Shown here: positions 23,581 through 30,577 of the stretch, in pieces
How the letters are laid out: the number at the start of each line of letters is the position of its first letter
Numbering within the stretch: the stretch's first letter is position 1
Origin: Dicyema japonicum
Lineage: Eukaryota > Animalia > Dicyemida
DNA length: 64,000 bases
Direction of reading: 5' to 3'
Assembly (NCBI GenBank): GCA_011109175.1
Contig: RDEW01000002.1
Span: 810,676 to 874,675, forward strand
Translations under genes and position numbers: made by a program
The notes under the pieces: generated by a model
What the model saw: only the letters and a program-made list of their open reading frames with translations
The model's database searches: none
What the model was told of the DNA's origin: nothing

Positions 23581-24440
23581 ATGACAACCAGTGACCTGTC
23601 TCGAATGATATCATCCATCTCTTCCAGTCACAATGAAGGAGTTGTCTGAAACAGATGTATGATTTTGGTTCTACGAGAAGCATCCGAATACTCGATGATA
23701 ATAAAATACTACATCGGCCCCCTCTTCCAATAGGCCAATAAGAATCCTCTCTTCCGAGGGTAAACCTGGCTCGTCTACGATGTGGGCACTATCCCTCTCT
23801 AACGACGTACGATGTTCTTTGTCCTGTTTGAAACCTCTACGAGTTGACAACAAATCACTTATTTGAATGTCATAATTATCACAACGTTCGTCTACAATGC
23901 CAGGACTGACTTATCTATGGGATCGACTGGCATCTGATGCGTCCTATTTAATAGCTGCTTGCCTCGAATACTTTAGTGAGACTGAGGTTACTTAACTAAC
24001 TAACTAGAGGCCTGCAGAAGCTGAACGTTGTACGTGCGCTTGTCCTGAGGACTCCTTTGAATATGGATGCTTCTGTTGCAACACTACCTGTAAACTATCG
24101 CGCCGGTTGTGTAGTATGCCTCTGTTGCCTAGATATTCGCGTTATCGGAGACTACGCTCCACATAATAAACTCGATATACCGGAAAACCATACATATGAT
24201 GGGCCCTCAGATTGGATCAACTCTCAATCCCTACTAACGGAAGAAACGACCCGTAATCGCTTATCCCGATTCCTTCCGGTCTTTGAGGCAAAATAAATTC
24301 GATTCGTTAAGAAGTTTCCTTCTCCAATTGGATTCCTCTTCAGGGATGAGAGAAGGCTTTTTCTTAGGATAGTGGGAACAATGAAAGACCACAGACGTTG
24401 GATGGCTCGATTGATGCGGGAACTGGAATTTCCTTAATGT
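23581..24440 (+). pseudogene. Unidentified spliced gene remnant
   Basis: Coding-like composition with short GT-AG candidates (e.g. GTTACTTAACTAACTAACTAG near 23987-24007), in-frame stops and a downstream AATAAA. Confidence 0.35.
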
Positions 24441-24998
24441 CTGACGTTTTTTATGTCTTTCTTTCTCGATGATCCTGGGGTTGTAAATAAATATTCACAA
24501 TAATTTATTATTTTTGTAATCCGAAGGCATTCTTGATTATCGAACAGAACTGTATACGAGAGGAAGAAGTGTTCGCCAATCTCAAATGAAATCACGGAAC
24601 TGAATGGATGTTATTTTTTCACGTTCTGATAATGTACCTGAAAACTCTGCAAAATCGATGTCATACACTTTCTACATGATTAATACAACACACGTAAAAC
24701 CACATTAGCCATATAATTAGAGGTAAGATGTTCGCAACGATCAGGTTAACTATGCGGTTCCACCTTCCATGATCGTGTACAACCACTCTCAAGTCATCCA
24801 GATGGTTTGGAAATCTCAGTGAAAAATAGATGATCAACCTGGCTAGCTTTTTGCATTACGGCTAATAAAGTTATGATTAATAATTACAATTGATTAATTT
24901 TGATTAATAAAACATATATAAAACGTATTAAAAGCAATTAATTGTTATTTTTCATAACACGTTCTTGTGTGTCAACTTTATGCAGACTTTGAAAATCA

Positions 24999-27900
24999 AT
25001 GAAAAAACGCTGGCCATAAAACCAATACGGGCCACAACATAACTAACAGAAATGACCTATCCTCAACACTTCTCCTTTGTTCCCTATATTTACAGGAAGG
25101 AAAATTTGACCAGTGCATTAAGGCAGCCAATTCTGCCATCCTTATCCACCCCGAAAGACCTGAGTTATACATATACTTGGGGACAGCCTGCCGAGCTGTT
25201 GGATCTCTTCAGTACGCCACGGAAGCGCTCAGTCGAGCCCACAGTATACTCCCTGACCACGTGCAGACGGCTAGCGAACTCGCCCAGTGCTACGTCTCAC
25301 TCGGTTATGTTGACAAGGCAGTGAACGTTTACCTAAATCTGCTGAAATATAAACCAGTTTGCTTAGTATTTTATTTAGAATATCATCGAGATTCAATTGG
25401 CTGTCGGAAATCTGCTAAAAGTTCAAGGTCGATTTTTGGAAGCAAAGGTTTGGCGGGCAAAAAACGGCATTTTTGGCAAAAATTGCGCGCTTAATCTGAA
25501 TTGTTAGGAGTTGTCGTGGTGGGAGACTGTATGCATAATGTTGTGCTAAAATCCTGGAAGAGTTGCAATCAGCAGCTGGGCAGCAGAGCTAATGTTTAGA
25601 ATTGGTTGATGGGACTGCTGAATTATCGACCTGACTGTGCCCAAGCAATGTATCTACTGGGAACTGTTTTCAGAGTGGAAGGAGAGTTGTGGCTGTCAAT
25701 TCACTATCTTGAGAAGGTTAGAGCCTTACTCCTCTATTCTTAGGCCACTCAGTTGGATCCCTCACTCTTTGAAGCCAAAATGGCCTTAGCTAACGCATTC
25801 AGAGAAGCCAAGCTGACAGACAGGTTGGTTGTACTCATCACAGCAGAGCAATCGCCATATATTCACAGATCAATGCCTCGTTTCCTAGCAATATTGAGTC
25901 TATCGTCAGTCTGGGTACAGCTTACTTGGAGAAGGGGTAACTTTACAGCTCACGCAGACTTTATGAGATGTCTATAGACTACTATCAGGCAGCTATAGCA
26001 CTGGATGGAAATTCGTCAGAGTATTATGGCTACCTCGGGAATGCTTTGAAGGAGAAGGGAATGGTGGTTGTTTCTTAACATGGCAGATTGAGGACTCTGA
26101 ACGCTGTTATGAGCATTCTCTGAAAATAAATCCGGCGCATATCGATTCCCTGAATAACCTGGCCAACATAAAACGGGAGAAAGGGAACCTTAATATGGCA
26201 ATAAGCCTATATAAGCAGGCTCTGAAGGTACACGTGCTCATAACTCAGATCTGTCCGACCATGGCTGTGGCACTGTCCAATCTGGGTTGCATATATCAGC
26301 AGATGGGGAAGTACAGTGAATCCTTCTCTTACTACAACGAGGCACTCCTGTATTAATTTTATATTCTCACCTTTTGTGTTACTTGTGATTATTACAGAAT
26401 TTCCCCCAACTTTGTGGACGCCCTGATGAACCTTGGGTGTCTGTATAAGGAAGTGCAAGACCTCAACAACTCCCTAAACTGCTTTAATCGGATTCTCTTG
26501 ATAAACCCAAACATTGCTGAAGCCCACAACAACATTGGGACGGTTTTTAGAGTAAATTTCTTTTTTTACTGTGTAGGACAACTCAAAGTTCATAGATGCC
26601 ATCCCCCATTTTAAAAAGGCTCTCAAATTGAAACCGAACTTCCCAGATGCTTTTTGTAATCTGTCTCACAGTTGCCTGGTATATTGTCGCACGGTTATTA
26701 TAGGTTGTCTGTGATTGGTCAAAATATGACGAACGGGTAAGACAGGTCGTTGCCATAGTGAAGGAGCAAATTGGTCGAAATCGCCCGCCTCCAGTACACC
26801 CTCATCACACTATGCTTTATGCGCCTCTTTCGGGCGAATTGGCTATTAAAATAGCAGAGAAATATGCTAACGCATGTGTTGACAAGGCAGTGATTGCTCA
26901 AAACTGCAGGCCAGGCAACTAAACCGGACGTATTCTTACAAAATGCCCGCCAAGGGAGAACGGATTAAAGTGGGATACGTCTCATACGACTTTTGCAACC
27001 ACCCAACCTCCCATCTAATGCAGAGCATTCCTGGACTTCACAACACTGAAGACTTTGATGTTTCATGAATATTAATATGTAGGTTCACTGCTATGCCCTA
27101 AATCCCCCTGATGGGAGTAAATTCAGGTCTAAGATAGCGGGGGAGGTAGAACATTTTGTAGACCTCTCCAACCTTCCTGACAGCGGACATGCGGCCGATT
27201 CAATAAATAATGACGGGATCCATATTTTGGTGAACATAAACGGGTACACTAAGGGAGCTCGAAATGAGATCTTTGCCCTGAGGCCCTCCCCAGTGCAGAT
27301 TATGTGGTTGGGTTACCCCAATACGAGTGGGAGTTCTTTCATGGACTACATAGTCCTGGATTCTGTCACTGCCCCCTTAAGATTGTCTCATTTGTACTCT
27401 GAGAAGCTTGCCCACATGCCCAGTTCCTTTTTCATTGGAGATCATCTTCAGGTTGTCGTTCGAGTTACCTCCAGATGTTTGGCCACCTCAAAAACCGATA
27501 TTGTCTGGTCAGGGACCGAAAGGCTGAGAACGACAAGATCATCAACTTTCCCGACAACTGTAAGTTCGTTACAATCACGGAGGTTTGATTTTCCGTGATT
27601 TCATTAGAAAGTTCCTTCAGGGATTTACCGTTCTGACATGAACCACGTGACTCTCGGTTGTTCTATCCCCAACATCATTGATTTGGCTGAGAAGGGAGAA
27701 CTCTACCTTCCCCAAGTTGATACAAAGCTCATTTATGGCTCGGCTATGCAAAAAGTAGTAGATTGAAGTCAATCTCTTAGTTATATCCCACTTGTGCTTC
27801 TGGGGAGGAGAGTATAAGCTACCCTGTGTACACGTGCAGGAAGATGTACAATCTCCCACAGAATGGCATTGTTTACTGCAATTTCAACCAATTTTACAAA

Positions 27901-28519
27901 TATGATCCCAATACCTTCGATCTCTGGTGTAGGATTCTCCAGAATGTGCCAAACTCTGTCCTCTGGCTGCTGATGTTCCCCCTGGAGGACAAGTGAATCT
28001 GTTGGAAGTTGTGCGAGGAAAGAAAATCGACGAAAAGAGGGTCATATTTTCAACTGTGGCGCCAAAAGTTGGTTGTTTTATGTAATTGCCAAAGGAAGAG
28101 CACGTGCGTCGAGGACAGTTGGCTGATGTGTGTCTGGATACTCATCTATGCAATGGGCATACGACGGGAGTAGACATTCTGTTTGGGGGGACTCCTATGG
28201 TGACTTTACCTGGGGAACATTTGGCCAGTCGAGTGGCTGCCTCCCAGTTGAAGGCGATTGGATGTGGGGAGTTGGTGGCGAAGACTGAGGAGGAATATGT
28301 GGATATTGCTACTCGCCTTGGAAATGAACCTTCCTTGTTTTAGTGGTGGTTATTTATAGTTTGGAGAGAGTTAAGAAGAAGGTTCGGGAGAATCGCTTTA
28401 ATGCTTCTATATTTAATGTGGAGGGATATGTGCGAGATTTGGAGGGATTGTACAAACGAATGGTTAATCAGCACATTTCCTTTGGACGACCTGATCATCT
28501 ATTGGCTCAGGATTATTAA
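24999..28519 (+). CDS. OGT: O-GlcNAc transferase (TPR repeats plus GT41 catalytic domain), about 17 introns, three apparent homopolymer-associated frameshifts
   Basis: [88 protein letters not shown]; stop TAA at 28517-28519. The start codon is uncertain. Confidence 0.95.
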
Positions 28520-28573
28520 TAATTTTTTAAATAAACCTTTATCACTTTTTGATTAATTATTTTTAATACCAGT

Positions 28574-29660
28574 GGTTTTCATGTCTGTCACGTGCTCGTG
28601 GAGAGAACTGGAAACATTGTAGCAAATCTTTTTTCCCTTATCAAGCTATTACTAAAAAGTTGGGGATATAATAACGAACTTACCAAAAATTGTATTGATA
28701 TACGTAACATAATCATTGTCTGACATTGCTCTTATCCAAGCTTACATCGGAATCCAAGACTCCACACTTCAAGAATAATTTTGTTATACGTGGGGTGGTT
28801 CACTTATTGATATTTCAGTGAATTACTTCCCCATCTGTCTATTGAACATATTAGGGATGTTCTCACAAATTGTCTGATTGCTGCTGACAAAAAATATATT
28901 CCACGTGGTTTCATTTCGTGTTCAGAGGTTATTTTAAAATCTTTAATTAATCAACTTGTTGCTAATTCTTGAAACGCGAATGCAAATTCTCTTAGACGTC
29001 ATACATCACGTCGAAAATCTCTGTCCGAACAAGCTTTTTTTTCTTTAACCGATTTAATGGGACACTCGATTAATCACGGATCGGTGGCTATGCTCTGGAA
29101 AAAATCAACAATCATTCCTATTCTGAAGCCTAATCGCTATTTTTCTGATTCTTCTAATCGTCCTATTTCACTTTTTTTCCCGAAGATTGCAGAAATAATT
29201 TTACTATTTTAGTCAAACTGTGGCTGTCATTTTAGTCAAACTGAGGTTTCATTCAACCACAGTCTTTCAAAACTGACTCAATTTATTGCTGACGGCTTTA
29301 ATGACAGTAAACCTCCGGAAAGTGTTACAAGTGGCATGTATTGATATCAGCATAGCTTTGACTGTTCATCGAGATACGTTCTAGCAGCAAGATCCTTGCT
29401 ACGAAAATCTTTTCCCGATTGAAAATGGTTACTTGCTTTCCTCTCTGATCGCATTGAATGGTTCTTTATTATGTCAACCTACTATCGTTATCGATATCTT
29501 CCAAATGGTGTTCATCAAGTCTCGGTCTTCTCTTCCAGAAGACAAGCCCCTCTTGTCCTTGTTCGCCTTCTAGTTCTGCGCCGCATAAAATATAGCTGAC
29601 TGATCTCTTAGAGTCTCTACTTTTGGTTATGACTTTATGTAACCACCGGTTTCCTTCACT
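28574..29660 (+). mobile_element. Degenerate APE/RT LINE with partial HDV-like 5' motif
   Basis: WKKSTIIPILKP...RPISL, DISIAFD and NGVHQ remnants. 5' GGTTTTC...TGCTCGT...GAGAACT-GG forms a 7-bp P1 followed by GG. Confidence 0.65.
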
Positions 29661-30577
29661 TGAAAGGGCATCCGGTTAAAGGAAAAGGAAAGAGGGTCTT
29701 CATCAAACTAAGTGATTTCGGAGTGACAAAGAGGAAGACGAGACCAACGGAGATCCTGTATTACCCTTTTATCGGGTATAGCGTCACCTCGTATTTTGAG
29801 TACATTTCAAGGTATTTGAGCTGGAATTGTGCTTAATGGACTCCCTATAAGGTGGTTGCCTCTATTAAGTTCCTCTGTTCATAAAAGTGGACTTGAAATT
29901 TGTTGACAGCTTATTAAACAGCGGTTAGAGTCACTTAATGGCACTTTAGTGAAAAGACACTCCATCTTGTATTTTTAATTGTCATAAAAAATTATGTGAT
30001 ACCGATTGAGTGACAAATACATTGGTAGTTTATGTCAGTACATTCAATCGGCAGTAAGTTTCTTGCATTTGCAAGCTGTACCACCGATCATCGCTCCAAC
30101 AGTAGAATATATCTGTTCTGCCTTGAGGTTTTCACCTATCTCTCCGAAACCATGCTTTTTTGTCAAGTCCTCCAGATCAGACCAGAAAAAAGACATCAAA
30201 TCGAGTTCCCTGAAGGTACATGTGGAGAACTACCGGAAACGATGGATCACTATTGACCATTCTATGAGAATTTGGAGAGTCTTGGAAACTAAATCACGGC
30301 TTGATACTTTTCTAGATGCTTTTGGAGATTTTAAGACAAGGGCTTTCAGACATCATGAAGCTAGGTAGACACAGGTAAAGGGATATTAAATGAAGTAAAA
30401 ATTTCCAAAGACCACCACGGTAACATAAAAACTAACTAATCACGTGATTCCAGCACGCTCTAAAAGACATTTCAACCTGGCCGATGGTCCTCCCTCGAGC
30501 ACACACAAGCACGTATCGGCCATATAACTGGCTCCTCGTAGTCTTAGCGGCACGTTCCTTGGTTCTTACGTATTAAG

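Follow-up and report, generated by a model that had tools for sequence, protein, structure and literature searches.

The stretch of DNA analysed here (the window; 64,000 nt of Dicyema japonicum contig RDEW01000002.1, positions 810,676 to 874,675 of the forward strand) carries the gene OGT, the longest intron of which (152 nt) is a genuine spliceosomal intron at an ancient position of animal OGT genes, numbered intron 4 in vertebrates. In the sequencing run X5, the 5' splice site of this intron (25448) is left unspliced in a large share of the RNA. The observations made here concern the anatomy of the intron, its conserved position, its retention and the use of an internal, proximal AG as 3' splice site. 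They suggest an unproductive-splicing brake on the sole OGT gene, built from two nested 3' sites, a reading to which we give an even chance. The gene, the intron and its flanks comprise the following features.

24980 to 28519, plus strand: OGT gene with 18 coding exons and 17 introns, modelled from frame translations, a scripted exon chain and exon matches to OGT.
25357 to 25378, plus strand: neighbouring intron of 22 nt, cleanly removed in X5 (contig 28, depth 325/325), without an unspliced variant contig.
25379 to 25447, plus strand: upstream exon of 69 nt, NIIEIQ..FLEAK, phase 0 at both ends.
25448 to 25599, plus strand: long intron of 152 nt, GT..AG, phase 0; its productive excision (25447|25600) is demanded by the reading frame and the TPR register.
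25448 to 25507, plus strand: proximal intron unit of 60 nt, free of AG up to its own AG and spliced out in part of the X5 RNA.
25491 to 25495, plus strand: branch-like TTAAT from the motif scan, the A of which precedes the proximal AG by 13 nt.
25505 to 25507, plus strand: TAG, in frame on retention, overlapping the AG of the proximal 3' splice site (25506-25507).
25508 to 25599, plus strand: AG-rich and G-rich tail of 92 nt, left in the RNA by proximal splicing, with ten AG and a GT run at 25510-25520.
25547 to 25549, plus strand: premature TAA that ends the proximally spliced form after ..FLEAK and 13 codons.
25589 to 25593, plus strand: branch-like CTAAT, the A of which precedes the distal, productive AG (25598-25599) by 7 nt.
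25600 to 25716, plus strand: downstream exon of 117 nt, NWLM..HYLEK, phase 0.

In order, the OGT introns measure 22, 152, 27, 20, 21, 23, 21, 48, 25, 25, 20, 23, 23, 25, 26, 27 and 23 nt; apart from the introns of 48 and 152 nt, all (15 of 17) fall between 20 and 27 nt. An original prediction, made from the letters of the window, had placed the long intron (25448-25599) and both flanking exons (25379-25447 and 25600-25716) exactly, and the retention stop at 25505-25507, the AG at 25506-25507 and the GT dinucleotides at 25519 and 25529 that it named are all present. Its description of the intron as the longest in OGT also stands (152 nt versus 48 nt for the next), a suspected 5' intron of 231 nt having been dismissed by an X5 contig. 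It had called the intron relatively GC-rich as well, but a GC content of 0.45 lies within the range of the other OGT introns (0.22-0.52) and equals that of the exons (approximately 0.45).

The intron appears to be built of two parts. The first would be the AG-free unit of 60 nt (25448-25507) with a branch-like motif and an AG of its own, and the second the AG-rich tail of 92 nt, ending in another branch-like motif and the putative productive AG at 25599. No AG is found in the first 58 nt of the intron (P about 0.004, shuffling), compared to ten in the last 92 nt; the OGT intron of 48 nt is likewise free of AG. In 11 of the 17 OGT introns, the motif scan detected branch-like motifs of the form YTNAY no more than 15 nt from the 3' end. 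A U12-type intron was rejected, as the 5' end (GTTTGG) is unfit for this class.

None of the five public runs found in one sequencing-run search is recorded as RNA. Four of them are genomic and hold 0.96-0.99 of the sampled words of 25000-26400. Three DNA runs (X1, X3 and X4) were aligned to the window, and their contigs cross the introns unbroken. Run X5 dates from 2017, stems from a sample other than that of the genome runs, is recorded as 'DNA?' and holds 0.60 of the sampled words, compared to an expected share of 31-mers of approximately 0.66-0.73 for a spliced message. The contigs of the runs were aligned to positions 24400-26950, with contigs resembling human sequence excluded, and the X5 contigs in view end at 25535. 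X5 behaves as RNA: it is taken as such because contig 28 (24973-25448) has a depth of 325, compared to approximately 5 in the intergenic DNA upstream, and is missing precisely the 22 nt of intron 25357-25378.

At 25448, the X5 graph forks into two contigs, both of which start at 25419 and end at 25535, and the bubble closes at 25506. The unspliced arm (117 nt, depth 143) is colinear with the genome. The spliced arm (contig 30; 57 nt, depth 94.5) joins 25447|25508 with GT..AG ends and zero mismatches, and because of this joint the internal AG at 25506-25507 is regarded as a used 3' splice site. The long intron is represented by an unspliced contig of depth 143, whereas its neighbour of 22 nt, the sole other intron visible in the X5 contigs, is cleanly removed at depth 325. 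In this one run and at the level of contigs, the comparison of retention with neighbouring introns that the original prediction had suggested comes out in its favour.

X5 might instead be DNA or a mixture, with the 60-nt skip (25448-25507) representing a deletion allele or an assembly error. The entry 'DNA?', the differing sample and the joint with 27 letters on its shorter side would fit such an artefact. We consider it very improbable in view of the precise loss of the 22-nt intron at depth 325 next to an intergenic depth of approximately 5, and of the GT..AG ends of the skip, which lies behind a branch-like motif. Furthermore, the arm lengths of 57 and 117 nt are those expected for a clean graph bubble at k=31, and the skip is absent in all three DNA runs (X1, X3 and X4).

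The internal AG had been proposed to define a micro-exon or decoy exon together with the GT at 25519 or 25529. Of this proposal, the AG is indeed used as a 3' site in X5, but both GT dinucleotides are read through by both X5 contigs (view to 25535). Junctions at 25518 and 25528, to be looked for according to the original prediction, were not found in X5, and the corresponding micro-exons 25508-25518 (11 nt) and 25508-25528 (21 nt) were unseen and hence rejected. Among the GT sites of the tail, that at 25529 alone would yield an in-frame cassette, the micro-exon of 21 nt.

A junction 25447|25600 was not found among the X5 contigs, the view of which ends at 25535. No branch toward 25600 appears to survive in these contigs, because contig 28 ends at 25448 and not at 25447. 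No short X5 contig was present between 25536 and 25746, despite the share of 0.60 that X5 has of the words sampled from 25000-26400. This is most simply read as one long unbranched X5 contig downstream of the bubble that extends into the conserved catalytic part and was left out by the filter for human likeness. The next downstream introns would accordingly be without a retention bubble, because short unfiltered pieces would otherwise have appeared. The share of 0.60 fits a loss of most of 25536-25599 (expected approximately 0.66) somewhat better than retention (approximately 0.73), a difference which a few polymorphisms would erase. Judged from the X5 contigs, dead-end forms are likely to dominate.

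In the proposed brake, the single 5' splice site at 25448 would have three fates. Pairing with the distal AG would lead to full-length OGT. Pairing with the proximal AG would keep the 92-nt tail in the message and lead to the stop TAA at 25547, and a failure of splicing at 25448 would lead to the stop TAG at 25505. The latter two fates would make up most of what X5 shows, next to an upstream neighbour intron that is cleanly spliced. The long intron would limit the amount of productive OGT mRNA in this way, and the dead-end RNAs would be degraded or held in the nucleus. With regard to the features by which unproductive splicing is recognized, an alternative site is joined at 25447|25508 (depth 94.5) and a premature stop lies upstream of later junctions; both TAG 25505-25507 and TAA 25547-25549 have 15 introns downstream. 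The proximally spliced form appears to be a dead end without a second splicing step to a productive product, because its junction reads AAG|GA. Recursive splicing after loss of the 60-nt unit was rejected, as this junction regenerates GA and not GT. According to the proposed brake, the dead-end forms would be maintained as such rather than tolerated as noise.

A comparable arrangement is known from the unproductive splicing of SR protein and other splicing factor genes, in which alternative 3' sites or poison exons are coupled to nonsense-mediated decay. As in these genes, splice sites compete in Dicyema OGT, which is also a dosage-sensitive regulator gene, and one choice yields a premature stop far ahead of numerous later junctions; the likeness lies in the RNA forms. 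A regulator gene with a single long intron at a conserved position is also known in DBP2/DDX5 (p68), the autoregulatory intron of which has kept its place from yeast to human. Gene and mechanism are different from those of OGT, and this parallel is a lead only. Genomes with ultra-short introns, namely those of Paramecium and other ciliates, myxobolid myxozoans and microsporidia (PMC5014332, PMC13644364), share with Dicyema introns of approximately 20-27 nt, minimal signals and stops upon retention. The reports on them cover genome-wide traits, whereas the long intron of Dicyema OGT, with its two nested 3' sites, is specific to one gene.

The main rival explanation is an ordinary long intron, in which retention and use of the proximal AG are splicing noise that is cleared by surveillance and has no regulatory role. 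The median intron of Dicyema sp. is 27 bp long, with about two thirds of the introns below 30 bp and about a third of at least 30 bp (PMC6543705), and the mean in Dicyema japonicum is 38.2 bp (PMC6736024). Long introns are a real minority in dicyemids and not rare, and one in a gene with 17 introns is unremarkable. The chance that a lone long intron among 17 falls on the intron-4 position is approximately 1 in 17. Cryptic use of an AG would be plausible in Dicyema japonicum, the splice signals of which are reduced to GTa and AG (PMC13644364), and neither structure nor Rfam match nor repeat was found in the intron. On the other hand, the dead-end forms are not minor in X5 (depths of 143 and 94.5 versus 325 upstream), no productive junction is present in its contigs, and a competing AG with a branch-like motif of its own persists in the sole OGT gene, though one base change could remove it. 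Taken together, we consider noise a serious but rather doubtful explanation.

Several points weigh against the brake. The RNA evidence comes from one RNA-like run that is recorded as 'DNA?' and was available as contigs rather than reads. Contig depth is a poor gauge of isoform ratio, and rare variants are dropped from contigs. The view of X5 stops at 25535, which places the junction 25447|25600 and the fate of 25536-25599 outside it, and the joint 25447|25508 has just 27 letters on its shorter side. A spliceosome adapted to introns of approximately 25 nt may handle every long intron in this manner. The AG-free stretch could simply result from the removal of any AG that would yield an intron of the favoured length. 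In addition, the assembly has a probable frameshift in exon 17, described below with the gene model.

Another source of the extra length might be a snoRNA or a piece of a transposon, or else a promoter inside the intron or the first exon of a short OGT isoform, as has been suggested for human mOGT. The mOGT start lies inside human intron 4, 150 bp before the next exon, and leaves nine TPRs (PMC4901358). Near its 5' end, the Dicyema intron has a TTTGGCGGG-like motif and a run GCGCGC, which resemble E2F-type sites when read by eye, and the ATG at 25609 in exon 4 could begin a shorter protein. However, the TAG at 25597-25599 shuts the frame of exon 4 from upstream and stops any intron open reading frame (ORF) entering it, and the unspliced X5 contig runs on from exon 3, which argues for retention rather than for an internal start. 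No Rfam match was found across 24000-30000 at E up to 10, and the long intron has neither a C box nor an ACA on the plus strand. Its fold is no better than that of shuffled sequences (z-score 0.31), and a genome search with the intron finds only itself. The snoRNA or transposable element named as an alternative in the original prediction was not recovered, and the chance that any of these elements explains the extra length is slight.

The position of the intron in OGT is ancient in animals as far as sequence comparison tells. At the protein level, the 69-nt exon aligns best with human OGT ..DLGNLLKALGRLEEAK, ending in GRLEEAK. A metagenome contig of a distant animal (L009), reached by a search with OGT exon 14, contains a 69-nt exon ELYGVRSDLGNLYKALGRLEEAK followed by a 117-nt exon MCYTKAIETQ..HHFEK. 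Both are in phase 0 with AG|..|GT borders and are separated by an intron of 1,637 nt, while the adjoining introns measure 897 and 2,104 nt. The exon pair and the intron position are considered ancient because L009 has the same lengths, phases and position, in accordance with the claim of the original prediction that the position is shared with other animals. No sequence similarity was found between the long intron and its homologue in L009. The human counterpart is taken by us to be intron 4, in view of the exon boundary of the human gene, the L009 exon pair and PMC4901358.

A word search with OGT exon 2 returned no dicyemid relative, and neither the gene itself nor a close match came out of a library search with exon 14. 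Compared with krill OGT, the exon-14 fragments, including the eight best single-stretch matches, are nearer to krill than to Dicyema over their best aligned stretches, with the exception of P0030, P0035, P0157, P0043 and P0048, which are 64-72% identical to Dicyema exon 14. None of the fragments is regarded as a dicyemid relative, because either krill is nearer or the identity is just 64-72%. Three metagenome contigs (L006, L007 and L008) carry a compact, crustacean-like OGT locus, the TPR part of which is 93% identical to krill OGT and has lost most TPR introns. L006 was uninformative as a comparison for the intron position, as the exons for the first 263 residues lie outside the 10 kb upstream.

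A further explanation, put forward in the original prediction, is that the intron and vertebrate OGT intron 4 are one homeostatic switch by common descent, shrunk to 152 nt in Dicyema. Retention or decoy use would then prevail at high O-GlcNAc and productive splicing at low O-GlcNAc. In human, retention of intron 4 responds to O-GlcNAc and needs a silencer of 526 nt, which overlaps a region conserved to jawless fish; Drosophila is without such an element (PMC5588854). The human decoy exon (143-153 nt) contains a premature stop, besides two 3' and two 5' sites, and its inclusion is rare (PMC12017769). Vertebrate intron 4 (PMC5588854, PMC12017769, PMC7373989) and the Dicyema intron lie in the same gene. 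The Dicyema intron is retained more than its visible neighbour, and an internal splice site is used, with premature stops in the products. The human intron is kilobases long with its silencer and decoy exon, compared to a total of 152 nt in Dicyema, where only the internal 3' site was seen in use, and often, in contrast to the rarely included human decoy.

Position, phase and flanking exon sizes match L009 and also human, where the intron lies between the exons ..GRLEEAK and ACYLKAIE.. (TPR 5). Retention and an internal 3' site that both give a premature stop also speak for common descent, as do the presence of OGT and OGA in one genome and the single OGT copy. OGA (GH84, PF07555) is encoded on the minus strand of the same assembly (G000:C314:73365-74283; L002-L005), and because it is present beside OGT, the O-GlcNAc modification cycle is taken to exist in Dicyema. 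The catalytic domain of OGA covers approximately 920 nt for 264 model positions, which leaves space for few very short introns and none that is long.

Against common descent stand the published reach of the 526-nt silencer, which was traced only to jawless fish and is missing in Drosophila (PMC5588854), and the lack of detectable intron-4 homology in fly, worm or zebrafish (PMC4901358). The 5' splice site of a decoy exon was not seen in X5 (view to 25535), 25519 and 25529 being read through, and the intron shows no similarity to that of L009. A shared position would be expected anyway, since dicyemids retain ancestral intron positions (Ogino 2010, cited in PMC6543705). In the literature, no paper was found that reports OGT retention at the intron-4 position in an invertebrate. 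An ancient O-GlcNAc-sensing switch would, on this analysis, run counter to the published reach of the vertebrate element, and we consider it unlikely. The original prediction as a whole was a good lead and is partly supported, though not as a demonstrated ancient switch.

In mammals, OGT dosage is tightly buffered by the detention of intron 4, and the published silencer reaches only to jawless fish. With one long, poorly spliced intron among introns of approximately 25 nt, Dicyema OGT is a small, tractable test case for the age of OGT splicing control. An isoform ratio that tracked O-GlcNAc state would mean that the feedback either is ancient or arose on two occasions at one site, with its essentials contained in 152 nt. 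Should the ratio be indifferent to O-GlcNAc, Dicyema OGT would still illustrate the way in which a spliceosome geared to ultra-short introns deals with a long one. With little confidence, we extend this to the proposal that control of OGT output by unproductive processing of intron 4 predates vertebrates, that Dicyema has kept a minimal version of 152 nt, and that long introns surviving the dicyemid shrinkage may mark conserved regulatory introns. If this is true, the Dicyema genome is a natural filter for functional introns.

A genome-wide exon search located OGT at a single locus in Dicyema japonicum, and a pseudogene or second OGT copy was ruled out on this basis. The OGT start is the ATG at 24980, which is in frame only with an extra A placed by the reads after 25001 and sits 7 nt from the start of the X5 RNA contig (24973). 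This extra A was seen in runs X5, X4 and X1, another one after 24821 was present in all four runs compared, and position 25005 is a G. The assembly of the window is without one A in each of the two A-runs (25001-25005 and 24821). In comparison with other animals, the protein beginning at ATG 24980 is missing the first TPR. The likeness of WKSQ..NDLSS to human ..WRQEPDNTG had prompted a longer 5' intron (24819-25049, 231 nt), which was rejected, as the X5 contig covers 24973-25448 without a break and the extra A after 25001 lets the ORF start at ATG 24980. An intron of 17 nt (25079-25095) that would join the MTYPQHF ORF is unspliced in X5 and was rejected as well.

The OGT frame shifts by one base within exon 17, at five consecutive C (27978-27982), where no GT..AG pair fits as an intron. 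This frameshift is probably a further homopolymer error of the assembly, because the predicted protein continues in register with other OGTs. Between 25006 and 26556, zero differences from the window were found in any run covering the stretch. At 26689-26763, a second haplotype was detected in the DNA runs X4 and X3, with seven differences in 75 nt; it spans intron 26679-26703 (25 nt) and the beginning of exon 12. Upstream of the gene, X5 has a contig of low depth (24543-24875, depth 5.5), in which 9 nt are inserted behind 24664 and two positions show A>G. Its source could be pre-mRNA or DNA in the background, or another allele that is weakly transcribed upstream. The DNA depth of X4 rises to approximately 21,000 at 24400-24485, compared to approximately 680 alongside, with many loose ends at 24448-24599; the stretch resembles the border of a high-copy repeat that lies directly upstream of OGT.

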